Assembly (NCBI GenBank): GCA_002269645.1
Contig: NIVC01000907.1
Coordinates: 306,858-370,857 of the forward strand
From: Macrostomum lignano
Lineage: Eukaryota
Direction: 5' to 3'
DNA length: 64,000 nt
The notes under the pieces are model-generated. The model was given only the letters and a program-made list of their open reading frames with translations. It made no database searches and was not told where the DNA came from. The position numbers were made by a program, and so were the translations under genes. Position 1 is the first letter of the stretch, and each line of letters begins with the position of its first letter. Shown in pieces: positions 3,759-59,800 of the stretch.

Positions 3759-4927
3759 AAGCATCGCATTGGACAAAGTTTATCTAAAGATTTTTTGTCT
3801 GTCAATCGCAAGGCTAGCAACATAAATTTTATTGGTTAATATTGTAACAGGTATATTGGTTTTCGCTTTAATTCCTTTATTCCTTGCTTTGTTGAATGCG
3901 AAAATGGTTTCAATTTTATCTCCAGACAGCCGGTTTCTCTATAGTTTCTCTAAGAGGCCAAGAAATTGAGTTACGTTAACTACGATACATATCGGCTATT
4001 TTGACCACCGCTGTGATCGGGCTTAAATTTAAGTGAAGCAAACAGTAGCTAAATTTTTTTATAAATATAACACCAGTCATCATTTTAAATTTACGCCATG
4101 AGTTGCAGCTATTTCTTAATTTAATCGAAAATTTCAAATCTATAAAGCAACATACAGCTCCATAAAGTTAACTTTCGATACATATCGGATAAACTTTATG
4201 TAAGAAGTTGCATTATATTTAAGCTAATTTTAACCAAATGTACGCCTCGTCGGTTGAATTGCTGTCTGTGATAAAAGTGCAATTCTGAAATATTTATTCT
4301 GCGATTTCTACCGCCTTAAGTCTCTCTTTGTTTGTCTGCTTTGTTTTTATATCAAATAAATATGCCAGTTCGTGTCTTCTCAGACGGCTTTCTACTTGTA
4401 TAAAAAATGCTTAAACATAATTATATTTTTTGTCTTCTAATTGCTTTTCGTGTTTTGATTTTAAATTAAAAAACAACAAGCAAATCATTCTACTGTAAGT
4501 AGAAGTTACTTATACTTATAAATTTTACAAAAACTGTTTTTCTATACATATCGGCAACTGACTAAAAAACAAGAATTATGGCTAATACCTCCGATTTTTC
4601 TAGCAAATTAGCAAATAATATTTGTACTAATTTTACAGAAAGCTGTTTGCATCTCAGCTACAATTCACCTGGAAATTGCAGCTGCTTTTAGATTTCAAGA
4701 TTTGGTTTACTACAACTGCCGTTACGTTTACTTATACTCTATAGGACGGACTGTTATAAGCTTAGGAATGAGTAGCCATAAGTGTTCCATTTTCAACACG
4801 TTAGTATCTCAGTTTTAAAGAGCTTACCGTCTTACTCACCGATAAATTTATTTTTAAGTTTGAGTGCTAAGAAAACGTAAGAAATGAGCAAACGTAAAAT
4901 GGAAATACGAACGGTGGCAAAAATGTT

Positions 4928-5000
4928 TGGCCCTACCCAGGTTCGAACTGAGGACCTTCTGCGTGTAAAGCAGACGTGATAACCACTACACCACAGGACC
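4928..5000 (-). tRNA. tRNA-Val(TAC)
   Basis: 73 nt GGTCCTGTGGTGTAGTGGTTATCACGTCTGCTTTACACGCAGAAGGTCCTCAGTTCGAACCTGGGTAGGGCCA folds as a cloverleaf with anticodon TAC; T5 Pol III terminator just downstream (AAAAA at 4919-4923 on +). Confidence 0.93.
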
Positions 5001-5225
5001 ACGAAGGAGCAATTTAGTATACGTGTATTTTATTGGTGTCATGCCACTCTATAAGAGTTTAAATTTTAAGCAATTGAACTAAAGTAAATTTAATTTCAGT
5101 TACGACAGATTGTTTCTTTGGTGTGCGCTTTAATCAGAAATTGTTTAACAGGATCATTGATTACAAGTATGTAAATACGAATTTTACTTTTTTAACTAAT
5201 TCTTTCTCATTTAAGTTTCCCGGGT

Positions 5226-8317: not shown

Positions 8318-8677
8318 GTGGGGGGCCGTAGCCCAGCGGTATAGCGCAGGCTCTGGTGTGCCAGCGACCCAGGCTCGATTCCAAGTGCAGTCACATTAAT
8401 TTGGGGCTGAATTGGAATCTCGGCTTGGCTCTGCTCGTGCAATTAACGGCCTTGACAGCCAACCCCCTAAGGCGCAGTGAAGTGTACATGCCTAACGATA
8501 AAATAAAGTTAGGGCCGCTGTACACTCCTGTGTGAGTGTGTGCCTGCGTACGTATCCGCGCGCTTGTGTGCCTGCTCAGGGGAGTCGGCGCAATGGGCAG
8601 TAATGCCTCTCGCCGGTTGTGTGCCTATGTCGCTTAAAGTGCGCCAGGGTGCCACAACCCACCAGCCTCTAATAAAA
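8318..8677 (+). mobile_element. Full-length tRNA-derived SINE with 12-bp target site duplication
   Basis: A-box 8329-8339, B-box 8372-8382, A-rich 3' end; direct repeat ATGGTACGTAGG at 8306-8317 and 8678-8689; homologous copy at 30455-30620. Confidence 0.8.
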
Positions 8678-8959
8678 ATGGTACGTAGGATATAAAATTA
8701 ACACAAAACATAAATTTTCTAAACGAAAAGCTTTATGAATATCGATAGAGTTATAAGAAAGGCACAGCACATCAAAAGATAAACATTGGGTCTTCCTCCG
8801 ATCAAAAGCAATAGCAAAAAACTTTTGTGCTAAAAATTAGAAACTTCCTATCTCCGTAATGTATTTTTTCGGTAAAACCTGCCTCCTACAGTTCTTCCAA
8901 GAAACACCGTTTCCCGTCCTTCTACTTGAGTAGTCCTTGGCTCAGTTCCTCACTGATTG

Positions 8960-10915
8960 TCAGTTCTTCAGGCAGCAGCAGTGGCTCCGCGCCGTCCCAT
9001 TCTTTCCTGAAACCCGAGTTCGAACGCTGTGCGCCACGAAGTCGCTCGCCCCGCCTTGCGCCGTTCTCAGGCCAAAGTGCCGCTTAAATCGCCAGATGAC
9101 GGTGGCGTATTGCGCCACGAAGTAGTTAGCCAGCACGGCCTGTCGAAACTGAACGTCTTCCTGCAGCAGCGTGATCTGCTGGGTGAGCAGGGCAATGCCA
9201 AAGTTGAGCAGGAATACCACAATGCACAGGTAGACGAGAGCCTGCGGCCACAGCACCAGGTAGTCGCTGTAGCCGGGAAACTGGCTCAGGCTGAACGTGT
9301 AGCGAAACGTTCGACCGACGTATTCGATAGCGCAGGACCAGGAGTTGTGCTCGCACAGCAGGTAGGGCTGGGTGAGCAGCATTGTGAGCCCAACCAGCAG
9401 CAGCGGTAGCCCAACTAGTAGCAACAGCTTAGTTGAAGAGTTCATGCAGTAAAGCAGGTAGAAAATTGTCTGATTGCAGCAGGACAATTTGCACAGGAAC
9501 ATCACCATTACCAACATCATGAACGAAGTGTTTACAATGAAGAATAGCATCAGCCTTGAAGTATCCACGTACCAGCGACCGTCAACTTGGTAATAGCTGC
9601 TCTTGTCGGAGAAGAAAATCACCTCCAAGCCGACTAGCAGCAGCTGGCATAGCAGAAAGATGCTGACGATGCCCTCCAGTAAGTACTTCTTCATGCTGAG
9701 CGCGCCAGCCAGCAACTGCAGGGGGAACCTGTTGACCTGCAGCGACTTCGGCAGGCTGTTATTGTTAGTCACAATGGCGCCAAACCAAGCACACCAAAAC
9801 AGAACGCTGAGGCTTTGAATGACAAATCGGGCGTAATACACGTAGCGAAAGGCAAGCAGAGTGTCAGGTGGGACAGCGCTCAGGTAGAACAGGCTGTAGT
9901 TAAACTGCACCGGCAGCAGCACCTGCTCAGTGGCATTGAAGGTGTCCCGTGTGAAGATGCGGACCATCAAGGTGGACAGGACGCTGAACAGCAGAAATGT
10001 GAAGAATACGAGCGATATGACAGCCGTGTAGCCGCTTGGCATCAGATTCGAGGAGCTGCGAAAATATGCGGCAGCAACGGGGCTGCTGAAGAAGCAGAAA
10101 AACCCTGGCTGCAGCGTGTCTCCTAGCAGAGGTTGCGCAAACTTGATGAGCTGGATGAATGGCGACTTGTTGTACCGACTGCCGCCCAATGAGTGCGAGT
10201 AGCGGCTGAGGTCGACCTCCTCGACCAGCAGGCTCGGGTCGGTCGGGTGCTCCCGCTCTCTGATCAGGTATCCGGGCGCATTGGCGAACGCTGTCGCCAG
10301 GTGGAAGCAGTCCCTGGCCGCCGCGTACTCCAGCGGTGTCAGGCAGTCGGCCGTCAGCTCCTCGCTCAGCAGCCGAGCGCACGCGTCCGGATGCCGGCGC
10401 GACAGTCTGGCGAAGAGCCGAGCGAGCTGCGCCTCGTCAGTCGGGCTGGCCAGGCTGGAGCAGCAAAAGTCCACCAGGAGGAACAGGGCGCAGCGGGCGC
10501 GGTCCCACAGACCGAGGCTGTCGACCAGCTCGACTGCTCGGCTGGCCAGCTCGTCGTCCCGAGCGAGCAGCACGAGGCAGAACGGCGACAGCTTGGGCTG
10601 CCGATCTGCCTCCGAGCTGTCGTCGGTGACGCCGTCGCAGAATCGGCAGTCGTTGTGCCGCAGCAGCTCCGGACGGTGTTTGAGAGCTTCAGCGAACTTC
10701 GGATATTGTCCGGAGTACAGAAGTACCATGTCTGGATCTTTTGACATCTTTGGTAGGTTTTTGGACTCGTGACCGACTTCCTCGATTGCTTCAACTCTCC
10801 AATACATTTTGATGTCGAGTTGCTTTGGCTTTGGTGCTGTTTTTGGGGCTGAGTTATGCTGCGCAGGCTTTGTCGAATGCTCAAGATACTCATTATTTAA
10901 TTGACGTCCATGCAA
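8960..10915 (-). CDS. Intronless TRPV-like cation channel, paralogue A (open frame; first in-frame ATG 10807)
   Basis: Ankyrin-like LTPLEYAA, VDLS linker, six hydrophobic helices, pore segment FRYTFSL and S6 LLNFGIALL followed by a TRP-helix-like segment; 651-codon uninterrupted frame. Confidence 0.75.
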   Translation of the reverse strand: MHGRQLNNEYLEHSTKPAQHNSAPKTAPKPKQLDIKMYWRVEAIEEVGHESKNLPKMSKDPDMVLLYSGQYPKFAEALKHRPELLRHNDCRFCDGVTDDSSEADRQPKLSPFCLVLLARDDELASRAVELVDSLGLWDRARCALFLLVDFCCSSLASPTDEAQLARLFARLSRRHPDACARLLSEELTADCLTPLEYAAARDCFHLATAFANAPGYLIREREHPTDPSLLVEEVDLSRYSHSLGGSRYNKSPFIQLIKFAQPLLGDTLQPGFFCFFSSPVAAAYFRSSSNLMPSGYTAVISLVFFTFLLFSVLSTLMVRIFTRDTFNATEQVLLPVQFNYSLFYLSAVPPDTLLAFRYVYYARFVIQSLSVLFWCAWFGAIVTNNNSLPKSLQVNRFPLQLLAGALSMKKYLLEGIVSIFLLCQLLLVGLEVIFFSDKSSYYQVDGRWYVDTSRLMLFFIVNTSFMMLVMVMFLCKLSCCNQTIFYLLYCMNSSTKLLLLVGLPLLLVGLTMLLTQPYLLCEHNSWSCAIEYVGRTFRYTFSLSQFPGYSDYLVLWPQALVYLCIVVFLLNFGIALLTQQITLLQEDVQFRQAVLANYFVAQYATVIWRFKRHFGLRTAQGGASDFVAHSVRTRVSGKNGTARSHCCCLKN

Positions 10916-12435
10916 TCAGATTGCCTGCATTGTTATCGACCGGAAGCTCCAACATTAATTATGGCTCATTCCTAGCCAGTCACTAACTCTGGTTGCCATA
11001 GAGATGCAGATCTACTTTATTAGCTGAATTATGCTGTTGTCAACTTTGATGTTGCCATTGACAGGTAAATTGACAGCCGGGCAAATGACTTTTGTTTCCA
11101 TTGTATTGTATATCGTAATCTAATTACTCAAAGGAATAGGACCGATACATTTGTCAGAAGTAATTCTTGTTCAACCGGGTCGGGGTTCGGGGTTCAGGTA
11201 GGGGTACCGGGCTCGGGGTTAACCCGTCCCGAACACCCCTAGCATGGAGTCTTTGGGCGCTGCCGCAAAATCAAAGCGACGGCGGATCTGCAGCCAGCGA
11301 GGAGGCCAGCAGTGTTCAGCACTGAGTCCGCACACTCTGAGAGAGTCGGACGCCTTTACTGCCTGATTCTGGCCCTAAATTCTAATATTTGACATGCACG
11401 GTAAGCACCACTCAACCTCCATCCTAGTTGCACACTCTACCCCTCCGATCGGTTCTGCTTAATTACCAGGTACTTTGCTGTTACCCAAATGCTTGCGTTA
11501 CAATAAACTGACAGCGGCTGTATTTGATGGGTAAACAGACTCAGTCCCATTAATAAGCAAATTACTAAGGAATTTATAATTCACGATTTTATCTGCTTTG
11601 AGCTAATTAATGTAGAAATCAGCAATCCAAATAGTTAAGCTAAGAGCATTGACAGTGCTCAACTGCATCGCATCTGGCTCCATCCCCATGGCAACACAGA
11701 TGAGGCCAGCAGATTAGCTAGTCGGCACTCTACATAATTTCAGCTCACAGCGGGTACAAAACTGAAAGCTGCGAGCGCAGGTGGAAGCCCAGGAACTCCT
11801 CTTACAAAGTCCCGAGCGGCCTGATTGCCGAGAAGAACCCCAGCTGCCATGAAAACGATCAAGAATGTCTGCAGTGCCACATCCTCAGAAGTGAAAGAGG
11901 CCATGGAGATTTTGTACACAAAACAATATAGGAAATTTTTCAACGAACTGCAGCAGCGTCCGGAGCTGCTGCGGCACAGCGACTGCCGATTCTGCGACGG
12001 CGTCACCGACGACAGCTCGGAGGCAGATTGGCAGCCCAAGCTGTCGCCGTTCTGCCTCGTGCTGCTCGCTCGGGACGACGAGCTGGCCAGCCGAGCAGTC
12101 GAGCTGGTCGACAGCCTCGGTCTGTGGGACCGCGCCCGCTGCGCCCTGTTCCTCCTGGTGGACTTTTGCTGCTCCAGCCTGGCCAGCCCGACTGACGAGG
12201 CGCAGCTCGCTCGGCTCTTCGCCAGACTGTCGCGCCGGCATCCGGACGCGTGCGCTCGGCTGCTGAGCGAGGAGCTGACGGCCGACTGCCTGACACCGCT
12301 GGAGTACGCGGCGGCCAGGGACTGCTTCCACCTGGCGACAGCGTTCGCCAATGCGCCCGGATACCTGATCAGAGAGCGGGAGCACCCGACCGACCCGAGC
12401 CTGCTGGTCGAGGAGGTCGACCTCAGCCGCTACTC
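10197..12435. repeat. 479-bp inverted repeat: 10197-10675 vs 11957-12435, spacer 1281 bp
   Basis: Arms give identical translations in all frames apart from two substitutions (N/S and R/W). Confidence 0.93.
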
Positions 12436-13729
12436 CAGCTCTGGTGGAGATCGCTTCCTAAAGTCTCCGTTCATGCAGTATCTGAGATATTCTCAAATTT
12501 ACGTGGCCGAAGAAATTCCTGCAAAGTACATCTGCTTTTTCAACAGCTCGGTGACCCAGGCCTTCTTTAAAAGTATCGGTGACTTTGGTTTTAGCCTCTG
12601 GGAGTCCCTTATCGCACTGTTTTGGTACCTGCTCATGTATGCCATCCTACTGTCCACACTGACTGTGCGGATATTCACAAAGGATACTTTTGACTCTCAG
12701 GTCCAAGTGCTCATCCCGGACAGTGCAAATTCTAACCAATCTTACATTCAGTTATTGTCGCCAAATCTTGTTGCTGCATTCAGGTATGTTTTCTACGTTA
12801 GAATCGGCCTGCAGGTCTTTAGTGTTGCAGGCTGGCTGTGGTGGCTGGTTGCCAGAATATTTGAACTTCTCAGCCAGCCACTGCTGGTACGAAAGCGCCT
12901 GGGTGTGCTGCAATGTCTTAAGAGCGCAGTTTCTTTGAGAGGCGGCGGTGTTTTTGATTCGTTCATGTTTCTTTTCATGCTGACGCAGGCCTTCATCATA
13001 ATGCAGGAGCACAACTTCTTCAGCGATTCAAGAAGCTACTATGAGGTCGATGGGCAGCTGTTTGTCGAGGGGTCCCGGCTTCAGGCGGTGGTCATGCTAA
13101 ATTACGTCTACATGTTTACCCTGCAGCTGTTCTTCATCATGGACATGGCAATGTTTTATCAACTGTTTCTAAACGTTCTGCTCTGCATGAACGCGGCAAT
13201 GAATCTGACATTTCTAGTTGTGCTGCCCTTGGCTCTGATCTGCGCCACGATGCTGCTCAGCCAGCCGTACATCGAGTGCTCCGTCTACTCCTGGACGTGC
13301 GCGGTGGAATATATCGGCCGGTCACTGCGGTACGCGTTCAGTCTGGCCGGATTTCCCAGCATCAGCGATTACGTCACCCTGTGGCCGCAGATCCTCGTGT
13401 TCCTCTTTGTTGGCATTTTCATCCTGAACTTTGGCGTCGCCCTGCTCACCCAGCAGATCAGCCTGCTGCACGAGCACTTCGAGCTTCGTCGAAAAATTTT
13501 AAGCTCATTTTTCGCGCAGCAAACCATTTTTCTAAACAGGCGACTGTCGGATCGACTTCGTCGAAGCAAACAGTCGAGCAATGACAGCCGGGTCACCATG
13601 CGCCGGTCCGTGCCCAGACTTGGTGAAGTGGAATTCGGATCGCCCCATGGCTGCTGCATTGCTGACTATCGACCGATCGCGTTCACAAAATGCCGCGTTG
13701 AAACTGATAAGGCGATGAATGCCGCGTGA
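11849..13729 (+). CDS. Intronless TRPV-like cation channel, paralogue B
   Basis: Same architecture as paralogue A (LTPLEYAA, 6 TM, LRYAFSL pore, ILNFGVALL S6); ATG 11849, TGA 13727-13729. Confidence 0.75.
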   Translation: MKTIKNVCSATSSEVKEAMEILYTKQYRKFFNELQQRPELLRHSDCRFCDGVTDDSSEADWQPKLSPFCLVLLARDDELASRAVELVDSLGLWDRARCALFLLVDFCCSSLASPTDEAQLARLFARLSRRHPDACARLLSEELTADCLTPLEYAAARDCFHLATAFANAPGYLIREREHPTDPSLLVEEVDLSRYSSSGGDRFLKSPFMQYLRYSQIYVAEEIPAKYICFFNSSVTQAFFKSIGDFGFSLWESLIALFWYLLMYAILLSTLTVRIFTKDTFDSQVQVLIPDSANSNQSYIQLLSPNLVAAFRYVFYVRIGLQVFSVAGWLWWLVARIFELLSQPLLVRKRLGVLQCLKSAVSLRGGGVFDSFMFLFMLTQAFIIMQEHNFFSDSRSYYEVDGQLFVEGSRLQAVVMLNYVYMFTLQLFFIMDMAMFYQLFLNVLLCMNAAMNLTFLVVLPLALICATMLLSQPYIECSVYSWTCAVEYIGRSLRYAFSLAGFPSISDYVTLWPQILVFLFVGIFILNFGVALLTQQISLLHEHFELRRKILSSFFAQQTIFLNRRLSDRLRRSKQSSNDSRVTMRRSVPRLGEVEFGSPHGCCIADYRPIAFTKCRVETDKAMNAA

Positions 13730-28140: not shown

Positions 28141-29010
28141 TCATTCAGCTGGGATGAAGTGCCACTGGTTCACCTCCGGCGGAATGGGGCAGGGCGGCTG
28201 CACGGCCGGCTGCTTCTCCACCAGCTCGCGCGCCTCCGAGTGATCGATCTTGTACGCGCTGCCGATCACGGAGACGTTGTCGCACGAGATCGAGTTCCGA
28301 TCGACCACGTGACCAACCAGCGACTGCCAGCTGCGGTGCATCTCGTCAATGATGCTCAGCGCAAAGTCGCGGCTCTGGAACTGGCCGTCGAAGGCGAACT
28401 CGTTGCGCGGCTTGCCCTGCGGCACCTTGTAGTTGCGAAACCAGCCGCGCGTCGCGTCCAGGAAGCCGGGCATGTGCGTCTCGATGTCCGACACATCGTT
28501 GAGCTGCTCGGCCAGCGGATCGGAGGTGTCGATGGCCAGCAGCTTCCAGTCGGTTTCGCCCTCGTCGATCATGGCTAAAATTCCCAGCGGCTTCACCTGA
28601 ATGACGGAGCCGCGCGGGTGGACCCGGTGCCCGATCTCGCACACGTCTAGCGGGTCATTGTCTCCCTTGGCCTGTGTCCGCTCGTCCGTGTGGTTCGGGT
28701 CCTCCCAAGTCTGCGGCAGGGCGCCGTAGTTCCAGATGTAGCCGTGGTGGGGGAACACGTTGTCAACATAGCGCAGTTTGCCCTTCTTCACGTCCTGCAC
28801 GATGGGGTTCAGCCTCTGATCCTTGCTGATCTCCATCTTTGCGTTCGTCCAGCGAGGAATCTCAACCACCATGTTGAGCTCGCGCTTCTCTGAGCAGGCG
28901 AACAGCGGGATGTCGTGAAAGGGCGAGATTGGCCCGTTGGGCCCGTAGAAGTACAGCTTGTACTCAGTGGAGTACGGAGCGCCGCGCTCAATAACCCAGT
29001 ACTTGGACAT
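28141..29010 (-). CDS. PPA1: Inorganic pyrophosphatase (family I), intronless, 289 aa; upstream in-frame ATG at 29127
   Basis: ISPFHDIP, VEIPRWTNAKME, WNYGALPQTWEDP, GDNDPLDVCEIG, IDEGETDWK, WFRNYKVP motifs all intact. Confidence 0.96.
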   Translation of the reverse strand: MSKYWVIERGAPYSTEYKLYFYGPNGPISPFHDIPLFACSEKRELNMVVEIPRWTNAKMEISKDQRLNPIVQDVKKGKLRYVDNVFPHHGYIWNYGALPQTWEDPNHTDERTQAKGDNDPLDVCEIGHRVHPRGSVIQVKPLGILAMIDEGETDWKLLAIDTSDPLAEQLNDVSDIETHMPGFLDATRGWFRNYKVPQGKPRNEFAFDGQFQSRDFALSIIDEMHRSWQSLVGHVVDRNSISCDNVSVIGSAYKIDHSEARELVEKQPAVQPPCPIPPEVNQWHFIPAE

Positions 29011-29284
29011 GGTACTTCGCTGCAGCTGCGATTCTCGCCTTTCCTTGCTTGATCCTCTGCGCTTCTTTTTCTGCTGGTCTTCTGACTGTTTCGTGTCTTT
29101 CTGCTGTAACGGTTTGTTGGAATTCATGATTTCGGATTTACTAGAGCGACAGCAATTGTAGAGAAAATGCAAGCAAGAAATCTGGCCCAGTTACAAAATA
29201 TATAGTTGCCAACAAAATGCTGAAACCACTGGGGAAGAAAAGGCTTGAAGTGATTTTTCAGACGGCCATAGACAGTTTACACAA

Positions 29285-30454: not shown

Positions 30455-30620
30455 GTTAAGGGCACATTGTCACGCAACCGGCGAGCGACAGCGGCCCTAA
30501 CTTTATATTATCGTTAGGCATGTACACTTCACTTTGCCTTGGGGGGTTGGCCCCCAACGGCGTTAATTGCATGAGCAGAGCCAAGCCGAGATTCCAGCTT
30601 AGGACCAAATTAATGCGACT
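30455..30620 (-). mobile_element. 5'-truncated copy of the SINE at 8318
   Basis: Reverse complement matches 8385-8520 (GGAATCTCGGCTTGGCTCTGCTC...GTGTACATGCCTAACGATAA.ATAAAGTTAGGGCCGCTG) and lacks the internal segment ~8521-8610. Confidence 0.8.
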
Positions 30621-30685
30621 GCTCTTGGAATTTTGGAAGTTAAGCTGAAATCGTAATAACGAAACGATTTGACAGGTAATAAACA

Positions 30686-34037: not shown

Positions 34038-34827
34038 CCCGAGCCGCTGCAGGTCTGTCTGTCTGGCAACTGTGCTGTACCCGGCTATCCTGGACTGGGA
34101 TTTCTGCCCGCGGTGCGGACGCACTCTTTATAGCGATGGGGGAGGAAAATTGCTGGCCAGAGAGGGGGGAGGTGGCTGGCAGTTGCTTGCCGCAGCGCGG
34201 GCGACTGTCTTTCCGCGGTGCCTCCGCCCGGCCCCCGGGGTTTCTGCCCGCCCGGCCGGCCGTCCCTCCTGCTGTGGGGATGGGATTATTGAACCGAAGA
34301 GGAAAGGAAACAGGCCTGCTGGGACAGGAGTGCAGAGCCGAGCCATTGCCTGGAGACAGAGCTTCTCTTCGTGTACACAGTGAGTACAGTCTTGGTGTAC
34401 TTCAGAATGCCCTGGCGATGGTCAGGGAGCGTACACCGGGTTCGGGGTTGGCTGGCGGGACTGGGGTGGCTGCCCAGATCCCCCGGCAGTCGCTCGCCCA
34501 CGCTCTGCTGCTGCTGTCAGCCCGAAGCGGTGGGGGGGGGCTGGCCGAGTCCGAGTTTCTGCGTGCGAGGATGAAAGACGGCGCCAGAGCTGACGGACAG
34601 CAGATATCTGTTGCTGCGAAGTAAACAAACTCATTTCTTAGGTAATGGGAATCGCGGTTTATCGGTATGTGGCTGCTGGCTCATGTCAGTGATAGTTGCA
34701 TGGAGGCTGCGGGCACCCTAGCCTTTGGGAGGCTGTGTGCACCATAGCTGGCAGTCATGGTCGTGAATCTTTGAAAAACCCGAATTAAAGGGCCTTTTAA
34801 ATTCATTTCCTTTCAATTTGCCAGCCG

Positions 34828-37139: not shown

Positions 37140-37581
37140 TTGAACTCTTGTTGTCTGCTTGCAGCTGCCGCTGCCGCTGCTGCTGCTGCACCAGAAACGA
37201 TTCGTTCACCGATTGCTTCATCGGGAGGCTGCGAGTCACCTAATTACAACAAAAGTAAGTAAATTTGATTGTAGGAATGACTGCTACAAATACATGCGAG
37301 TACGAGTTGACACCGATTCCTAGCTTTCAGAGTCCCCATCGAATGTGACAATAAAATTCGAAATTTGCAGAATCGGAATGGGAGAGCTTTTTAGTGAAAT
37401 TCGGTTCAGTAGTAATTCAATGCAATTGCAACAGCACCTACAACAACAGAAACAACAGCAGCAACAAGGACAACAGCAGCAACAGCAACAACAGCAACAA
37501 CAGCAGCAGCAACAAGGACAACAGCAACAACAACAAAAACAGCAACAACAACAACAACAGCAACAACAACAACAATAAAAA

Positions 37582-37612
<31 letters not shown>

Positions 37613-40600
37613 ACCCGCCGGAGTCTACTTCTGGCCCACCGGACAAACACCGGTGGCTCCTGCTAGGCGCCACGTCACCGTCGTGGAGGGGTCGCCCCGC
37701 CTTTTTGGCGGAGCCCGAAGAGCGCCTAAACTCGGACACCAGATCGCCACCTGGTCTAGTTTGGTTACGTAGAACCAGAGCGCGCGAACTGAGGCCTAAG
37801 GCCTACGGAGTTGGGCGCCCGGCCCCCCAGCTCCCGGCGCTGCTCCTTATGGCCGGAGATGTCGAACCCAACCCGGGACCGGATTGTGGGCACCCGAACT
37901 GCGGCACTTCGATTCGCAATAATCCCGCGGTCTGTTCTAATTGCCAGCGCCACTTTCACCGGCAGAGCTCCTGCTCGGGTCTCACGCGTTGGAGGGCTGA
38001 CCGCACTGACTGGACGACCTGGCAATGCATTGTTTGCTCCCAGGACAACCGGAACCATACGGCTTGCTCCACCCAGCAGAATCTGAACCACACCCCCCCG
38101 GCCGCGCCGGAGGTGGTTGGCCAACCCATGACCACTCAACGCCGTACCAGACGCATGCAGCTCATTCAAAGAGAAAAACCAAAGTGTGGTGATTGCAACA
38201 AGCCCGTCCGCATCTCCACCATTATTGCGGAGTGCAAAGTGTGCGAGAGGCTGTTCCATAACGCGTGCACCAAGCAGACCAGAGAGGCTATCCGACGTGA
38301 TGTTGCCACGGGCCGCTGGACCTGTGAAACCTGCTTGCATCACCATAACAGACCGGCTGAGGAAGGGCAACCTAACCAGCGCTCGCCCGATCCCAGCCAG
38401 GACTTCAAAACCACCGCCAGCGAAGACTTGTCGGAGCCTGGTATTAGACTCCTCCAATGGAATGCGGATGGCATCCGCAATAAGTTAGGTGAACTTGAAG
38501 AAATAGCCAATCGGCTCTCTATCGACCTTATTGCAGTCCAAGAATCGAAGCTGGAAAAACAGCATCCAAACCCCAGGATTCCGGGCTTTACCACCATCAG
38601 AAAAGACCGGCAAATTGCCCGCAATGGAGCAGAGTCCAAAGGAGGAGGGCTGCTGGTTTTCGTGCGCCAATCCATCTCCTTCCGAAAGCTTCGGTACTGG
38701 GGCGGTGGCATCACGGAAGGGCATCGTATCGCCTTGCACATCACCGCCCGTGAGACCATCGTGCTGACCAGTGTCTACCGACCACCAACGCGGCGCTCCA
38801 ACACGGTGGACAGAAGAATCAACCCTAGTGTGGTCTCCAGGCTTACCCCGCACAATGCGGAGCTCATTGTGGGAGACTTTAACCTGCACCACCAGAAATG
38901 GGGCAGCAAACCCGGTCAAGGTCCAGAAGACGTTACTGAAGCCGGCTGCCTCGTTGACTGGGTTGAGAACAACGACTACCGCTTCCTCAACCACGGCACT
39001 CTCACCTGTGTCGACCGCCGGTCAGGACAGGAAAGCGCCCTGGACATCTCTTTCGCCAGCAGATCCCTAGCTGGGCGGTACTCTTGGACTGTCCTGCCGG
39101 AGCTGGGTTCTGATCATAAGCCGATTCTTATCACGATTCATGGTATCCGCCCGGCCCTGGCCAAAGAACCCAGGTTTTCCTGGGCCTGGAAAAAGGCCGA
39201 CTGGAATCGCTATCACTCCTACCTAGAAGAGCACTCTGCTGACCTGAACACCGGCACTATTAAACAGCAGATTGCCCGGCTCTGCACGACTATGAAGCAG
39301 GCGGCAAAAGAATCCATCCCGCTGAAGAAAGTCTCCCCTCGTAACCGCCCCTTCTGGGACGAGGAGCTTTCCCAGCTGAGAGATGAGAGGAACAACCTCC
39401 GTAGAAGGGGAAGCCCGGTCGAGGACTGGAACATGAAGACCCAAGAGCTGAACAGTCGGTGCGCTGAGAAGAAAGCCCAGTTCTGGAGAGAGTACCTCGG
39501 CAAGATCTCCTCCTCCTCCGACCCTAAGGCCGTCTGGAGGACCATTAAATGTTTGAACACGGGTAATAACGGGGCGTCCCCAACGAGACCCTCGTGGTCC
39601 AAGGCAAATAATGTAAGACTGACAAACAAAAGGCAGAAGCGTTTGGCAGACACTTTGCCAAGGTCTGCAGACCCGACCAACAACCGGGTGATCGCCGCTA
39701 CAAAAAACTCACCTCCAATCGCTTGAGTGCTTATCACCCGCATGCCAGCGACTATGACGCCCCCTTCACCAAGAGTGAACTCGAGAGAGCTATCGACTAC
39801 CTGGACATCAACAAGAAAGGAGGGCCGGACAAGATAGAGGCGGCATTCTTCAAGCACCTGCCAGAAAGCTGGACGGAAGCCTGGCTCAAACTCTTCAACC
39901 GTAGCTGGAAGATTGGCCACTGCCCTGGCATCTGGAAACAAGCAATAGTGGTGCCCCTCCTGAAGGACGGTAAAGACCCGCAGAGCTGCGATAGCTATAG
40001 ACCGGTCAGTCTCACATCGATCTGCGCCAAGATTATGGAACGCATGGTCCTAGACCGCCTCTTTCATTGGATTGAGACCTTCAACATCCTCAAACACTGG
40101 CAAGCGGGCTTCCAAAGAGGCCGCAGCTGTGAGGAGCAGGTCGCCCGTCTGGTCCAATCGATCCAAGACGGGTGGGAATGCAAACCTCCCCTCAAGACAG
40201 CGGCTACCGTCCTCGATTGCTCCAAAGCCTTCGACACAGTTTGGCATGACAAGCTCATTAATCGGATGATGGACGAAGACATGCCAGATCGTATGACGCA
40301 TTGGCTAGCCAATTTTCTGGAAGGTAGAACCATCTGTGCCAAAATCGGCAACACCACCGGGAAGTGGCGCCGCATCACCAGTGGAGTTCCCCAGGGAGCG
40401 GTGTGCTCCCCGGTCCTTTTCCTCCTTTACGTCAATGATTTGACTGGCTTCCCTGAAACTGAAGTTCAACTTGGAGGATTCGCTGACGACCTCTGCCTAT
40501 GGGCTACTGACAGTAGCCTTCAGAACCTCACCAGAAAGCTACAGAGCGCCCTGGACTTCATCGAAACCTGGACCAGAGACCTCCGTATCTCGGTTAACCC

Positions 40601-42161
40601 GGCTAAAACCCAGGCGTGCCTCTTCTCTAGGAACCGGGCCGACTTTGATCGGCCACCTGATCTCCATCTTGCCGGCACTCAACTTCGCTTCACTGAGTCT
40701 CTCAAATACCTCGGTATTTGGATCGACCGCGGACTCATCTTTGCTCAACAAGTTAAAACGGTCAAATAAAAGATGGCCAAACGCACCAACATCGTGAGAG
40801 CGCTAGCACAAAGGAGCTGGGGCTGGGACCGTAAGCTGCTGATGCGTACGTACACCGCCATGGTCGAATCTGTCATATGGCACGCGGCAGCGGCCTGGCT
40901 ACCTTGGCTATCCAAAAGCCGGTTGAACGAACTCGAACGGGCTCAAAGGGCAGCGCTCAGAACCGTGGCCGGCCTCCCTAAATCCACTCCGGAGGAGGCC
41001 GTTTACCTCGAACTCGGAACCGTTCCCATTTCCGTTGAAGGACACAGAAGAGCCCTGCTGGCTGTCAAGAAGGCCCTCAGGCGGCCTGCCTACGACCCTT
41101 GGCGCAGCCTCTGCGAAGACCAAGGCCGGCGCAGGCTCAAAGCTAACAAAGGCCTCCGGGATCAAGCCAAGCTGGAATCCGAGCAGATTCTGCATTGCCC
41201 ACGCCGGGAATCGAACTGGATCAGGAACGAGCCCTGGCTTCCGAGAATTGAGGATCGGGTCACCCTTTGCGAACACCTGACTCAGCCGATCTCCAGGAAC
41301 GATCCGCCAGAGACCAGGCGGTCGGCGACGGAAGACACCATTCAATCATGGGGCGACCGCAAGATCCACTACTTCACCGACGGGTCTGCATCAGAAGGAA
41401 CTGAGAATGGAGGGGCAGCCTGTGTGGCGGTCGCCCCTACCTCGGGCCAGGTGGTTTGGATTGAGTGAGCTGCTACCGGGCGCTGGTGTAGCTCGTTCCA
41501 AGCTGAACTCTCAGCTCTGCACCTCGCCCTGGATCACATCCTTGAGACTAAACAGGACTCTGCTCTGATCCTCACCGACAGCCGATCGGCCATTGCGGCG
41601 CTCAAGGGTCGGCAACACTCCCTGAACCCTCTGCTCGAGTCGCTCAAGCGCAAGCTGACACAGGTGGAGAGCCACGCCGACGTGGTCCTGCAGTGGATCC
41701 CAGGTCACTCTGGGACTCCCGGTAACGAGAGAGCCGACGTCGAGGCCAAGAACGCCTGTCTGCTCCCCCAGGACATTCTAGGGATCGACATCGAGGCCGC
41801 CCGCAGCCGTATACGCCGTCTCATCAACTACAGGCCTCTCCTGAATGACCGGCTGAAGCGGGTCTACAGCAAGACCCCCTCGATGCCCGTTCGCCCCCGC
41901 GCGCTTCAGGTTTCCATAGCTCAAATGCGTGCCGGTCACGATCCTTCCACGGCGTACTATCAGCACCGAATAGGCTCTAGGGAGGATAGCAGATGCCTCC
42001 GGTGCGACCTCTTTGAAGACAAGGACCACTTCCTCGAATGTCCGGCCCTGGCAGGAGCTCGGCACGCGACGGACCTACACCAACTGGAGGACTTGGCCGA
42101 TGGCGATCTGGTGGCTAGGTTCTTGGACTGCCTGCATAGGCAGCCCTAGACCACCTTCCGC

Positions 42162-42192
<31 letters not shown>

Positions 42193-44090
42193 GCAACAAC
42201 AGCAACAACAGCAACAACAACAACACCCCCTGGGATTTACTCCCAGCCTGCTGGGTAATCAGCAGGCCCTATCCGGCGCCGCGTCTTTGTCGCGGGGGGG
42301 AGGCAACGCCCGTTCTTCGGGCGGCGAAGAGCGCCGGGAATCGGTCACCGCTCCTGGCTCAGGGGCGGTGGATGTGGCTCGGTCCGGCCCTCTGTGCTCA
42401 GCCTTTGTCGCTGGCTCTGTCAGCGGTAGGGGTTTGGTACCTGGTCCGGTTATTTCGAGCTCGGTCCGCAGTCAACAACAACAACAACAGCAACAACAGC
42501 AACAACAGCAACAACAACAACAACAGCAACAACAGCAACAACAGCAACAACAGAAACAACAACAACAACAGCAACAACAGCAACAACAGCAACAACAGCA
42601 ACAACAGCAACAACAACAGCGTCAGACAGTACACCGCAGCACGCTGTACCTTGTAAATTGGTGCTCCAAAGCCGGAAGGTCTTTACCTTTTTCTGCCGCC
42701 TGGACACCTTGCAGGTGTACCTTTGATAGACCGCGTAAGCCAGGGTGAGCAGCACCATAGCGGCAAGCAGGCAGCCAACCATGACCAGGGCGGCCGACTT
42801 CTCAGCCTCCATGGACTCCGGCCAGGCAGGGGCTCGAGGAGCGGCCGGCGAGGTCGGCGGCTTTGACGACTGCGCGCAGCGGGGGTTCATACAGGCTTTC
42901 AGTTGATTATGGTTGATGGATTATCGACCCAGAGAGTTAGCATCGCTAGAGCAGCAATGCCAAACTGGTACACAGAGCACTTCAGCATCTCACAGCCTGT
43001 GAATCTCATACCCAAGAATCTCATACCCAAGAATCTCATACCCAAGAATCTCATACCCAAGAATCTCATACCCAAGAATCTCATACCCAAGAATCTCATA
43101 CCCAAGAATCTCAAACCCCACAATCTCATACCCGAGAATCTAATATCCCAGAATTTCATACCAAAGAATCTCATACCCAAGAATCTCATACCCAAGAATC
43201 TCATACCAAAGAATCTCATACCCAAGAATCTCATACCCAAGAATCTCAAACCCCACAATCTCATACCCGAGAATCTAATATCCCAGAATTTCATACCAAA
43301 GAATCTCATACCCAAGAATCTCATACCCAAGAATCTCATACCCGAGAATCTCATACCCAAGAATTTCATACCAAAGAATCTCATACCCAAGAATCTCATA
43401 CCCGAGAATCTCATACCCCATAATCCCATACCCGAGAATCTCATACCCCATAATCCCATACCCCAGAATCTCATACCCGAGAATCTCACACCCCATAATC
43501 CCATACCCCAGAATCCCATACCCCAGAATCTCATACCCAAGAATCTCATACACAATAATCTCCTAAAATTGAGGAAAGGTAGCACACTTTAGAAGGCAAA
43601 GGAATATAAAAGTGAAAATCAGCATAGCCTCAGCAACAGAATCTCAGAATCTCACACCTCAGAATCTCATACCCCAGAATCTCACACCTCAGAATCTCAT
43701 ACCCAAGAATCTCATACCCCAGAATCTCATACCCAAGAATCTCATACCCCAGAATCTCATACCCCAGAATCTCAAAGCCTGAGAACCTCACACCCCAGAA
43801 TCTCAACCTCAGAATCTCATACCCCAGATCTCGCACGGGGGCTCAATACAATGTGCCGCCGGTGCACAGGTGAGGCCCCGGCAGTCATAGGAGGGATTGG
43901 GAAAAAAGGAGGAGAATGGGGAAGAGAGAGAAGGGGCCGGCCTGAGTCAGCCAGCGGGGCTGGGTGAATCCGGTTCTCGCAGGTTAGTAAGTCGAGCTCT
44001 GTCGCAATCTGAATCGTTTGCTGGACCCGTTTCTTGCGATACTACTGAGTTCAGTAGCTCATGCTCTTTGCCTTGCTTCACCTTTCTTTA
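37140..44090 (-). CDS. Fragments of a possible Cys-rich single-pass membrane protein gene hosting the Ingi insertion in an intron
   Basis: Exon-like 42650-42895 (ACMNPRC...ALVMVGCLLAAMVLLTLAYAVYQRY..RRQKK: TM helix plus basic stop-transfer), DCRGLTCAPAAHCIEPPC near 43830-43890, candidate exon 37140-37240; full model not resolved. Confidence 0.4.
37429..37613. repeat. (CAA/CAG)n microsatellite 5' of the Ingi-type LINE; further tracts at 42161-42225 and 42473-42619
   Basis: Direct observation. Confidence 0.95.
37614..37728 (+). ncRNA. HDV-like self-cleaving ribozyme at the 5' end of the Ingi-type LINE
   Basis: P2 TAGGCGC(37664-70)/GCGCCTA, P3 ACG/CGT around L3 TCACCGT, P4 CCGCC-TTTTT-GGCGG, J4/2 CCGAAGA; P1 CCCGCC/GGAGGG has one mismatch. 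Confidence 0.7.
37840..37881 (+). other. 2A-like StopGo peptide (LLLMAGDVEPNPG|P)
   Basis: Exact D(V/I)ExNPGP consensus at 37858-37881 preceded by the usual hydrophobic LL.AG. Confidence 0.92.
42226..42337 (+). ncRNA. HDV-like ribozyme, copy 2
   Basis: P1 CCCCCT/GGGGGG; J1/2 hairpins GGGA/TCCC and GCCTGCTG/CAGCAGGC; P2 CCGGCGC/GCGCCGG; P3 GCG-TCTTTGT-CGC; P4 GCCCG-TTCTT-CGGGC; J4/2 GGCGAAGA with putative catalytic C42325. Confidence 0.8.
42226..42472 (+). mobile_element. Short non-coding element headed by an HDV-like ribozyme, with (CAA)n tail
   Basis: About 247 bp between two CAA tracts; no ORF; 5' 112 nt fold as an HDV-like double pseudoknot. Confidence 0.72.
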
Positions 44091-45245: not shown

Positions 45246-49029
<3,784 letters not shown>

Positions 49030-56800: not shown

Positions 56801-59800
56801 TCCTCATCGGACATGGCCACTGCGGCGGCAGCGGCGGCGGCTCCAGCAGCGGCAGCCGCGGCGGCGGAGGCGGCGGCCCGCAGGACGGGGACTTCAGCGG
56901 GGATGGGGAGACCGAAGGTGCGGCAGAGAGTCTCAAGCAGCTGGCAGGCCTGCAGCAGGAGGAGGCCGCGGGAGCCGGCGGGAGTGGCCGGGCAGTCCTG
57001 CAGGTCGGACAGAGCCGAGGTGACCTGCTGATTGTCCGAGTCTGAGAACCAGAGCGGCGCCACTCGGGGATAGTTTTCCTGATCAAATGGGACAGATTCG
57101 GGTCAGCAAAAGTATGCAAACTGAGTTCGATAAAACATAGATTTCTGCTTTTTTGGGATTAATTGTGTTCGAATTCGATGTCAGATAGGATGGAATTATT
57201 CGATATTGGGTGGGATAAGGATCATGTTCTACCCAAAGTCTACTTTGGATAGACTACAATCCAAAGATCCAATGTTTATCTTTTGATATCTCTAGCCTTT
57301 CCTATAGCTCTATTGATATTCAGATTATATCCTACATACAATTGTACATGTCTTGTGCCTAAAAATCTAGAATGATGATATTAAATTTATATTAGAATCC
57401 TAATTTTGTTATGGCAAAACTTTAATAAGAAATTATGATTTTTATATGCTACTACACTATAATTAATTATAATATTAATACATATTGCTTATTAATAGTT
57501 ATTATAAATGGTTAATACTTATATGTATTCAATCTTTTTTATCTTTAGTTTAATTATATCTAATAGTAATCTTTATATGCACAACTTTGAGAATCACCTA
57601 GCCATTTCTATTGGCAATGCATATATATATATAAGTTCCTATTAACTAAGAGTAGTCATGTGATTACTATTCCATCTATTAGTTACTTACATATATGTAT
57701 TGCCAATAGAAACAGCTAGGTAAATCCCTAGGTTACATTGGGATGTGGTCATTTTATCTACTATTAGTTTGTCTACTAGCAGACAAAATGAGTATTCGAT
57801 AGTAGGTGCGTTAATTGTTTATTTTAATATTATTATATAATAAACTATATATTACATGATTAATTAATTGATTTTTGCATAATTTAGTCACCAATATTCA
57901 AAGCAAAAAAAGTAAAAACTGTCATAGTTTGTTTACACATTAACTAATTTTATTGTTGTCTTTTTTATATTCACTTAGTTTAAAAAATATTTTGCAACAT
58001 AACCTTTGGCAATGCTTTGATTTCAATTCATTGCATTATATAGTGCTATAATTATAAAAAATGCACAAAGAAACTATATGAACCTCTTTATTTTATATGA
58101 AATTTCTACCAAAATATACATTCAAAACTTGGGATAAATCTATATTTATCTTAACAAAAGTAGCACTAAAGGATAAAAAAGATGGCTTATTTGTAAAAAA
58201 AATACTCTTTGCATCAATATATTTTTCATTTCTTCATTTGCTATATATTGCTTTCATTAGACATAACAACAGATAAACTATCTAGATACTTATCCTAGCA
58301 TGGGCCTCTAGGCTCTAGCCAATGAACCAACAATAAAAAAATGACCCAGTTATACCCAAGCATGATCTAAATTTAAGTATCATTTATACTTTATACATAA
58401 CCATAAGCCTTGGTCCTAGATAGATTCGGCCATTAGGCCTATATAAAAAAACTAAGCATAGGGCTAGGCCTATTCAAATTATAAAAATGCTACTGCTAGG
58501 GCCTAATATATACGAGGGGTGTTGCAAAAGTTTCCGGACTAATGCTCTTCATAGTGATAATTCGTGTTTGATTTGGCTGAAAATTGATGTCTATGGTATT
58601 CAGCCATAGAAAAAAACTTTTCCTAAAAGTTTTTGCAGCTTAGTCAATCACAGCATACATCACGGCCAAAATAAGTTGCAACCCTTTGAAGCTGTTGACA
58701 CGATTTTTCACAAACCAAAAGGGAGCAAAAATGAGTCGACCAAAGAATCCATTGGAGTTCGGGTCTAAGGAAAGCCAGCGCCACTTTATCATGGCATGCC
58801 AACAACAGGGCAAAACAGTGACACAGACCTTTGATGAGGTGCGTCTTGCTTTCGGTGTTCACGCCCTGGGTCGCACTCAAGTGTTTGAGCATCACTGACT
58901 CGCTGCTGACGGTGTCACCAACGTCGCTGATGCCTCTCGATCTGGGCGTCCTCGCTCGAGCACAGGTCATGACAAAACAACTGCTATTCTTGACTATTTG
59001 AAAGAAAATCCGTCTGCATGCATGCGTGAAATGGAGACTGCTGTTGGTATCCACTACTCATCTGTGTGCCGCATTCTGCAACGCCAAGGCTACTCCAAGA
59101 TTTGTGCAAAGTGGGTGCCACGTGAACTGACGGAAGAGCACAAGAAAGCACGTGTGCGTTACTCGCTAGAGAACTGGGCGTTGTGGAATGAACTGGGTGA
59201 CAGCAAGTTCAAAGAGCTGCTCATCACAATGGATGAAACACCGCTGCCCATGTTTCAACCGCAGACGAAACAGCAGACTATGCATTGGGGCCCAAAAGGA
59301 AGCCACCCGAACCAGAAGGCCATGAAGTCGGCATGGATGCAGAGTGTCATGTGCACTATGTGGTTTGATGCTCGTGGTGTGCTGATGGTTGACCACCTGC
59401 CCCAAGGTCAGACCATCAATGCTGACTATGTCATCGATCAGCTCCACCGCCTGCGTGATGCCGTTCTGAGTAAGCGTCGCAATATGCGCCAGAAGCCCTT
59501 CATTCTCTGGGACAATGCGCGTCCTCATGCTGCCGCTTGCACGCAAGCCAAGGCGGAAGAGCTAGGCTTCTGACTGCTGAACCACCCAGCCTATAGTCCC
59601 GATCTCGCCATCGCCGATTTTCACCTCTTTGGCCCAATGAAGATGCCAATGCGTGGCGAGATCTTCACAACGCGCGAGGAGGTCATCGAAGCAGCCAACA
59701 AGTCTCTGCATCGGTTCGATGCCAGCTTCTGGGAGTCTGGCTTCGACAAGCTGATTGAGCACTACCAAAAATGCATCTCCATAAATGGCGAATACGTGGA

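Follow-up and report, generated by a model that had tools for sequence, protein, structure and literature searches.

The window analysed in this work is a stretch of 64,000 nucleotides from the flatworm Macrostomum lignano (assembly GCA_002269645.1, contig NIVC01000907.1, positions 306,858 to 370,857 of the forward strand), and the coordinates given below are counted from its first letter and refer to the plus strand, unless otherwise indicated. We will focus on two adjacent mobile elements embedded in CAA- and CAG-rich repeats, namely, a degenerate long interspersed nuclear element (LINE) and a short non-coding element, both of which begin with a predicted ribozyme fold of the hepatitis delta virus (HDV) type. 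Upstream of the LINE, an imperfect (CAA/CAG)n microsatellite (37429-37613, period 3, 78% matches) ends with ...CAACAACA directly before the CCC that opens this element, and is probably its pre-existing target tract. The LINE, delimited by its translations and Pfam domains, harbours a single open reading frame (ORF) and extends from 37614 to 42160, with an HDV-like head (37614-37726) recognised by a covariance model derived from the short element and by pair lists. It is followed by a (CAA)n run (42161-42225), which represents its tail, or its tail together with leftover target microsatellite. The short element starts directly after this run, at C42226, and forms a discrete unit of 247 nt (42226-42472). 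It is composed of an HDV-like head reaching from P1 to the 3' strand of P2 (42226-42335), identified by folding, by comparison with the LINE head and by a weak Rfam match, and of a structured non-coding body (42336-42472) distinguished by its fold z-score and the absence of a Pfam match. Its tail (42473-42620, period 9, 94% matches) is mostly (CAACAACAG)n and merges with any remaining target microsatellite, beyond which the sequence is unrelated. The three repeat tracts were confirmed by Tandem Repeats Finder (TRF).

Reading of the sequence and folding located every feature of a preliminary description of this region at the position it had given. This description also presented the short element as stacked on the LINE tail. 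The element does abut the (CAA)n tail, but stacking as such is not demonstrable, because (CAA/CAG)n is also found upstream of the LINE, at 37429-37613, so that a single microsatellite may simply have received both elements. On the opposite strand, a first exon is likely at 42686-42812 (MEAEKSAALVMVGCLLAAMVLLTLAYAVYQRYTCKVSRRQKK followed by GTAAAG); if it is real, the LINE and the short element lie antisense within its intron.

The LINE comprises a 5' untranslated region (UTR) of 235 nt, one long reading frame closed by a TAG stop (42147-42149), and a 3' UTR of only 11 nt preceding the (CAA)n. Its translations, compared with Pfam, revealed zinc fingers, an APE endonuclease domain (~38452-39117), a reverse transcriptase (RT, ~39978-40724), an RNase H (~41499-41759) and a C-terminal Cys/His motif. 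The ORF begins with MAGDVEPNPGP (37849-37881), so that a 2A-like ribosome-skipping motif, DVEPNPGP (~37858-37881), occupies the extreme N-terminus; an N-terminal 2A has been reported for single-ORF LINEs devoid of ORF1 (PMC3894237). This combination of a single ORF without ORF1, APE, RT, RNase H, C-terminal Cys/His motif and N-terminal 2A is compatible with the Ingi clade, yet such features are not exclusive to Ingi. The copy is damaged by one frameshift near 39720 and by in-frame stops at 40767 and 41466. The closest relative of its RT in a set of 5.8 billion public proteins is only 51% identical, and the best matches are unnamed or generic animal RTs.

Folding and comparison allow the first 110 nt of the short element to be arranged in a nested double pseudoknot of the HDV type, whose joining region J1/2 holds two hairpins. 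In this model, P1 pairs C1-C4 (CCCC, 42226-42229) with G72-G75 (42297-42300), and can be extended from these four solid pairs to six (CCCCCU) if the first J1/2 hairpin opens. The two hairpins occupy 42230-42246 (positions 5-21 of the element) and 42247-42266 (positions 22-41). P2 is formed by GGCGC (42275-42279, positions 50-54) and GCGCC (42331-42335, positions 106-110), and P3 by two CGCG strands (42280-42283 and 42291-42294, positions 55-58 and 66-69), which enclose the 7-nt L3 loop UCUUUGU (42284-42290). P1.1 would consist of 2 bp, C42285 (C60)-G42302 (G77) and U42286 (U61)-A42301 (A76), and P4 joins 42307-42312 (82-87) to 42318-42323 (93-98). J4/2 reads G-CGAAGA and contains the candidate catalytic C at 42325, as had been pointed out in the preliminary description. 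Every nested helix is recovered by minimum free energy (MFE) and centroid folding, the MFE structure including P1, the two hairpins, P3 and P4.

With regard to the type of ribozyme, P1 follows in both heads the L1Tc/ingi pattern (CCCC/GGGG in the short element, CCC/GGG in the LINE), which is characterised by two or three consecutive C-G pairs in an orientation opposite to that of R2 and HDV (PMC3185411, PMC4035085). Active L1Tc-type ribozymes also rely on 2-3 C-G pairs in P1 (PMC4035085), and structured J1/2 domains have been found to activate large HDV-like ribozymes (PMC4908430). Searching Rfam at the gathering threshold identified no ribozyme in the window, and the LINE head has no Rfam match. 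The best HDV-like match to the short element, RF02682 at 42268-42338, reaches 29.5 bits for a gathering score of 44, and the core strings AGGCAACG...CGGCGAAGA line up with its consensus. This alignment sets P1 on the linker preceding P2, as a J1/2 of 44 nt cannot be accommodated by the model. Such a placement, on CCUAUCC, was rejected, as it requires an A-G mismatch, fits the LINE poorly and ignores the element boundary.

The head of the LINE can be drawn in the same manner. P1 pairs CCC (37614-37616) with GGG (37689-37691), two hairpins are present in J1/2, P2 is again GGCGC/GCGCC, P4 is present, P3 is CACG/CGUG, L3 is UCACCGU, and the candidate catalytic C lies at 37716. The two heads are ~70% identical, with the same order of parts, different stem sequences and every helix kept. 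CGAAGA is identical in both (42325-42330 and 37716-37721), P2 is invariant over its 5 bp, and L3 has 7 nt in each case, opening with U-C and closing with G-U. The base pattern of this shared core matches only these two heads in the window, and was found in none of 100 shuffles.

A covariance model was built from the short element alone and used to search 135 kb, corresponding to the window and four fetched loci. It retrieved the LINE head in register and end to end (37614-37731, 47.6 bits, E 1.2e-9), the match starting at 37614, the base directly following the CAA repeat. The matches ranking next (34211-34344 and 48384-48482, E 0.1-0.2) are unrelated sequence. Two of the fetched loci carry relatives of the LINE with 41-45% RT identity (L001 and L002), and neither contains a head matching the model; the former is rich in A+T and has a (CA)n tail at its end. 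In the model-based alignment of the two heads, 94% of the cells of 27 nested pairs hold standard pairs, and nine of the 27 pairs have changed on both sides and still pair. Sliding the 3' partners by 1-3 columns lowers pairing to 34-57% and leaves zero or one compensated pair. A separate count, which included P2 and aligned P4 from the loop outward, gave 30 pairs without a broken one: 19 are identical in the two heads, 2 differ on one side and 9 on both. In 200,000 shuffles of the partners, the full set of 30 never remained paired, it being understood that this covariation comes from two distinct sequences, from which the structure itself was drawn. The match of the covariance model and the nine two-sided changes bear out the earlier statement that the two heads have the same architecture with different, compensated stems. 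As judged from these comparisons, the two heads are clearly homologous and have been held in one fold while diverging at ~30% of positions, and that of the short element appears to evolve as a lineage of its own, and not as a fresh deletion product.

Covariation of this kind reveals selection for the fold and not for catalysis, and both heads could therefore be conserved structured modules that do not cleave, serving as a binding site for the LINE protein or as an internal RNA polymerase II (Pol II) promoter initiating at C1. The weak P1 and P1.1 and the sub-threshold Rfam scores would agree with such a role, as would the binding of the R2 protein to its own 5' ribozyme/pseudoknot region (PMC6765202). 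In addition, Pr77 of L1Tc is presented (PMC3383444) as a promoter, acting as DNA, as well as a ribozyme. We nevertheless consider a purely non-catalytic head unlikely, since the parts needed for catalysis only, namely, the C and GAAGA of J4/2, the ends of L3, and the P1.1 partner following P1, are invariant despite 30% divergence; moreover, binding or promoter roles and a catalytic role are not exclusive of one another.

The body of the short element, 137 nt in length, contains a 10-bp hairpin (CACCGCTCCT, 42346-42355, with AGGGGCGGTG, 42361-42370) and a long irregular hairpin at ~42376-42462, and its 3' end reads GGTCCGCAGT. Its fold z-score is -3.8, none of 200 shuffles being equally stable, and neither the body nor the open frame running through the element matches a Pfam protein family. 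Thus, a non-coding body with a hairpin and its own (CAA)n tail, as announced in the preliminary description, was indeed recovered. The same holds for the reported lack of RNA polymerase III (Pol III) boxes, insofar as Rfam, even at E values up to 10, detected no tRNA, 5S or 7SL head in the short element, and ARAGORN found nothing. Only weak look-alikes of these boxes are present, A-like at position 130 (one mismatch) and B-like at position 206 (two mismatches). Comparison of the body with the 5' UTR, the ORF and the 3' end of the LINE, as well as with its reverse strand, gave nothing scoring beyond shuffles. The two elements therefore have in common only the architecture of their heads and the CAA tail. 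The short element does not conform to a canonical short interspersed nuclear element (SINE), having neither a Pol III-type head nor a 3' region, beyond (CAA)n, in common with the neighbouring LINE; another LINE may nevertheless match it at the 3' end, and a parent LINE with the same head may exist. Furthermore, the lack of similarity beyond shuffles over these 137 nt led us to reject an internal deletion of this LINE as its origin.

To look for other members of the family, the 247 nt were translated in six frames, and the joined frames were searched against a protein database. One protein matched at 99%, M. lignano BOX15_Mlig000306g3 (425 residues), and led to a second copy at positions 10849-11095 of the fetched locus L004 (M. 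lignano NIVC01002246.1). This copy is identical at 246 of 247 positions, the sole difference corresponding to window position 42455. Its first bases, CCCCCTGGG, and its last bases, GGTCCGCAGT, are those of the copy in the window, and the latter are followed by (CAA)4 before (CAG)4. It is solitary, no LINE sequence being present in its vicinity, and is embedded in a short run of (CAG)n; its flanks are unrelated to those in the window, similarity stopping at both ends. The arrangement, CAGCAGCAGCA / element / (CAA)4 / CAGCAGCAGCAG, suggests an 11-bp target duplication, which is unprovable within a repeat. With its identical ends and unrelated flanks, this second copy identifies the short element as a discrete, recently mobile unit. 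It also settles two reservations attached to the preliminary description, that the element might exist as a single copy or be a one-off deletion of a full-length LINE: a near-identical copy with the same ends and no LINE occurs at an unrelated locus, the body is unrelated to the LINE, and the proposal of a family is upheld. An exhaustive HMMER search with the open frame, run over 1.84 billion representative proteins, returned nothing beyond the M. lignano protein mentioned above, and DNA scans of metagenome, bacterial and archaeal genome, and viral contigs with the core patterns revealed no further copy. The metagenome scan returned a single bacterial coding-region match, dismissed as due to chance. 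Another interspersed repeat is common to the window (8320-8678 and 30488-30631) and to L004 (20692-21052), with 91% and 83% identity.

The second copy bears on three other explanations of the short element. The first of these is a product formed once, in a single insertion, either by internal deletion of a LINE copy or as a chimera resulting from a template jump of the RT. The short element abuts the LINE tail in the window, the heads are homologous, its 247 nt are close to the 235 nt of the LINE 5' UTR, and template jumps are documented for R2 (PMC3414825). Such an origin appears very improbable for the element itself, given an independent LINE-less copy with identical ends and non-matching flanks at another locus, a head only ~70% identical to that of this LINE, and an unrelated body. 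The arrangement seen in the window could still result from a single template-jump event or, equally, from two landings in one microsatellite. According to the second explanation, the element would act in cis for LINEs, as a 3'-end processing cassette that accompanies LINEs, or inserts behind them, and trims read-through LINE transcripts at the end of the tail. The predicted cut in the window does coincide with the final base of the LINE tail; however, the other M. lignano copy has no LINE upstream, and any landing of two such elements in one microsatellite would produce the same effect incidentally. For these reasons, we regard a dedicated processing function as highly unlikely.

The third explanation is that of host coding sequence, in which case the unit would be no transposon but a piece of exon that was duplicated and is bordered by polyglutamine. 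One frame of the short element (42227-42472) is open for all of its 82 codons and is in phase with the CAA/CAG (Gln) repeats on both sides, and the gene model BOX15_Mlig000306g3 (L004 10001-11278) reads straight through it. Even so, this origin is scarcely credible. An open frame of 82 codons at this G+C content is expected by chance in about 1 case in 8, by our own estimate, no protein family is matched, and the 99.6% identity ends exactly at the borders of the 247 nt. Moreover, the HDV-like fold is common to the 5' end of a LINE, and in the window the unit lies behind a LINE tail. The apparent insertion at the second locus amounts to 11 + 247 + 12 = 270 nt, which is a multiple of three. Because the 247 nt are open in the Gln frame and the total insertion consists of whole codons, insertions into polyglutamine exons would be read through without truncation, adding ~80 residues, if the element belongs to the specialised lineage considered further below as speculative. 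An active ribozyme in BOX15_Mlig000306g3 would, in addition, cut the mRNA of this gene.

Taken together, we propose, with a probability of roughly 65%, that 42226-42472 is a young, discrete, non-autonomous retrotransposon carrying an L1Tc/ingi-type HDV-like self-cleaving head and mobilised by a LINE into CAG/CAA tracts. The element would be transcribed as part of a longer transcript, of the host or of an upstream element, in which the ribozyme would cut between A42225 and C42226 and thereby generate the exact 5' end, as suggested by the fold, the covariation and the start of both copies. The RNA would end in its (CAA)n tract, or be primed within it, and a (CAA)n-tailed LINE like the adjoining one would provide endonuclease and RT in trans. 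Target-primed reverse transcription could then take place where the (YTG)n strand of a nicked CAG/CAA microsatellite anneals to the CAA tail, an annealing that would lead to full-length insertions into CAG/CAA tracts. The first base of P1 is also the first base of the LINE and of the two short-element copies, and a 5' border at this position matches what self-cleavage would predict. In L1Tc, NARTco and SIDER ribozymes, the 5' cut before C1 has been mapped experimentally (PMC3185411, PMC4035085). Since a (CAA)n leader is unable to pair with the G-rich core, cleavage may well be independent of the transcript context.

With regard to the target, both short-element copies and the LINE lie in CAG/CAA (CAR) repeats, in the same orientation and with a ...CA/CCC junction, which points to a preference for such tracts in a sample of three insertions, far too small for a rule. 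A preference of this kind would account for the stacking of such elements, for the unstructured (CAA)n leader available to the ribozyme, and for insertions into polyglutamine-coding tracts, as in the one M. lignano gene model. The triplet phase of the junction is shared by the three insertions (37612-37616, 42224-42228, and L004 10847-10851), for a random expectation of ~1 in 9, and may reflect a preferred top-strand cut or microhomology.

Several points weigh against the proposed retrotransposon. Self-cleavage is a prediction from the fold. P1 is short compared with the usual 6-7 bp, measuring 4-6 bp for the short element and 3 bp for the LINE, P1.1 has only 2 bp in the former and 1 bp in the latter, and all Rfam HDV-like models score below their gathering threshold on the short element. 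Only two copies have been observed. The adjacent LINE may not be the partner of the short element, since nothing of the body or of the 3' end of the latter recurs in it; this LINE is, in addition, itself defective and devoid of a close public relative (51% for the best RT). The interpretation given in the preliminary description is partly supported, the support extending to the existence of a family, to the fold, to the 5' boundary and to a host that is an animal.

Among the closest parallels, together with the Drosophila R2 SIDEs discussed below, are the NARTc, RIME and SIDER elements of trypanosomatids, which are likewise short and non-coding, and whose 5' HDV-like head, the Pr77/L1TcRz ribozyme, is common with a single-ORF, 2A-bearing APE-RT-RNaseH LINE (PMC3185411, PMC4035085). 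As in these elements, cleavage, here predicted, would occur before C1, consecutive C-G pairs open P1, and the sequence downstream of the head is poorly related or unrelated to the LINE. The M. lignano element differs from them by its flatworm host, by a head of 110 nt with two J1/2 hairpins instead of ~77 nt, and by its (CAA)n tail and CAG/CAA targets, whereas the trypanosomatid elements have a poly(A) and a loose site preference. Furthermore, its head is ~70% identical to that of the neighbouring LINE, compared with near-identity in trypanosomatids, and its likeness to Pr77 is one of architecture.

The preliminary description had called the element analogous to RIME/NARTc, but in an animal. 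The likeness and the animal host stand, but the novelty of an animal host is overstated, in view of the Drosophila R2 SIDEs (PMC3414825) and of a review according to which HDV-like ribozymes are employed by some LINEs and SINEs of metazoans (PMC6765202). The Drosophila R2 SIDEs and the R2/R1 hybrid SIDEs are also non-autonomous animal elements with a 5' HDV-like ribozyme, which cuts the co-transcript, after which the LINE mobilises the element in trans in a target-specific manner (PMC3414825); in M. lignano, the cut and the mobilisation would be comparable. Unlike the short element, which shares only a microsatellite tail with the LINE at its 3' end, R2 SIDEs arise by internal deletion and retain the 3' UTR of the LINE, to which the recognition by the stringent R2/R1 proteins applies; they insert only in 28S rDNA, and the G-C orientation of their P1 is opposite. 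The HDV-like ribozymes of the R2, RTE and baggins LINEs (PMC6765202) show the same nested double pseudoknot and absence of an own promoter, with a cut at the first base of P1, as predicted for the M. lignano heads, and the Anopheles Agam-2 ribozyme (PMC4908430) possesses a structured peripheral J1/2 helix (P1.2) pinching P1 and P2 together. In contrast to ribozymes of the R2, RTE and baggins type, the M. lignano heads have two J1/2 hairpins and a shorter P1, and match no Rfam family at threshold.

Within the same phylum, the Sm-alpha SINEs and Perere-3 LINEs of Schistosoma are freed from a co-transcript by a 5' self-cleaving ribozyme (PMC6765202, PMC8501958), as proposed here for the short element. 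The class of ribozyme is different, however, as Sm-alpha elements, which are transcribed by Pol III, carry a hammerhead, and Perere-3, which is not site-specific, a twister variant.

In other respects, the short element resembles microsatellite-specific LINEs, in that tail and target are the same simple repeat and that elements pile up in tandem in one tract. Dong, specific for (TAA)n, Waldo, for (ACAY)n, and Mino, for (AC)n, are reportedly among the microsatellite-specific examples listed by Kojima and Fujiwara in 2004. These are autonomous LINEs of the R1 or R4/Dong clades, and we know of no report of ribozymes in them. For the M. lignano element, the apparent specificity is based on three events only. 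Microsatellite-specific non-LTR retrotransposons are also treated, in general terms, in a further article (PMC4640811).

Our search of the literature yielded no paper dealing with Macrostomum ribozymes, nor any in which the sequence of the element appears. Ribozyme-headed non-autonomous elements as such are already known from NARTc, RIME and SIDER and from the Drosophila R2 SIDEs. Compared with these known systems, the distinguishing features are the host phylum for the HDV-like class, a P1 starting with C outside trypanosomatids, the two-hairpin J1/2, and the CAA tail combined with CAG/CAA targets. A free-living flatworm, belonging to a genus used as a regeneration model, thus joins the hosts of predicted HDV-like ribozymes in retrotransposons. 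The element also exemplifies a short retrotransposon with a predicted self-cleaving RNA in place of a Pol III promoter, and hence dependent on co-transcription. Going further, the data could be read jointly as a SINE lineage dedicated to CAG/CAA tracts, including polyglutamine exons, whose C-start ribozyme, of a type so far characterised only in trypanosomatids, would represent an ancient Ingi-like module common to kinetoplastids and animals, or one that has moved between them, a scenario that we advance as speculative and rather improbable. From a practical point of view, the 110-nt head is a candidate compact ribozyme for bench use, and the LINE head and the short-element head, 30% different with all helices kept, make a natural pair for study.

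The window contains other remnants of mobile elements. At 46202-47953, a 583-residue ORF has the C-terminal part of an RT followed by several C2H2-like fingers, and a fragment of a Tc1/mariner-like transposase is present at 58998-59573. The whole stretch is extremely rich in minisatellites, with 53 TRF rows at a score of at least 100, whose periods range from 11 to 104 bp, and numerous arrays measuring 0.3-1.7 kb. The sole above-threshold Rfam match in the window is a tRNA-Val with a TAC anticodon (4927-5001, minus strand, 59 bits).

Among the other genes, an inorganic pyrophosphatase is encoded at 28141-29172 on the minus strand by one uninterrupted, intronless ORF. The nearest annotated M. 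lignano pyrophosphatase (10001-12654 of the fetched locus L009) has an intron and shares 66% identity at the amino acid level and 74-77% at the nucleotide level. Among Logan transcripts, the window gene finds a protein match of 90% and a DNA match of 86%, its other close matches being spiralian and other animal proteins. Its own protein is absent from the database, and its best named match, in M. lignano, indicates a macrostomid flatworm, and hence an animal, as the source of the window. The gene may be a retrogene or a divergent paralogue. Finally, two long head-to-head ORFs (8960-10915 on the minus strand and 11825-13729 on the plus strand) code for multi-pass membrane proteins, which are nearly identical over ~190 residues (LLRH.DCRFCDGVTDDSSEAD...EEVDLSRYS) and then diverge, and this pair looks like a recent inverted partial duplication.

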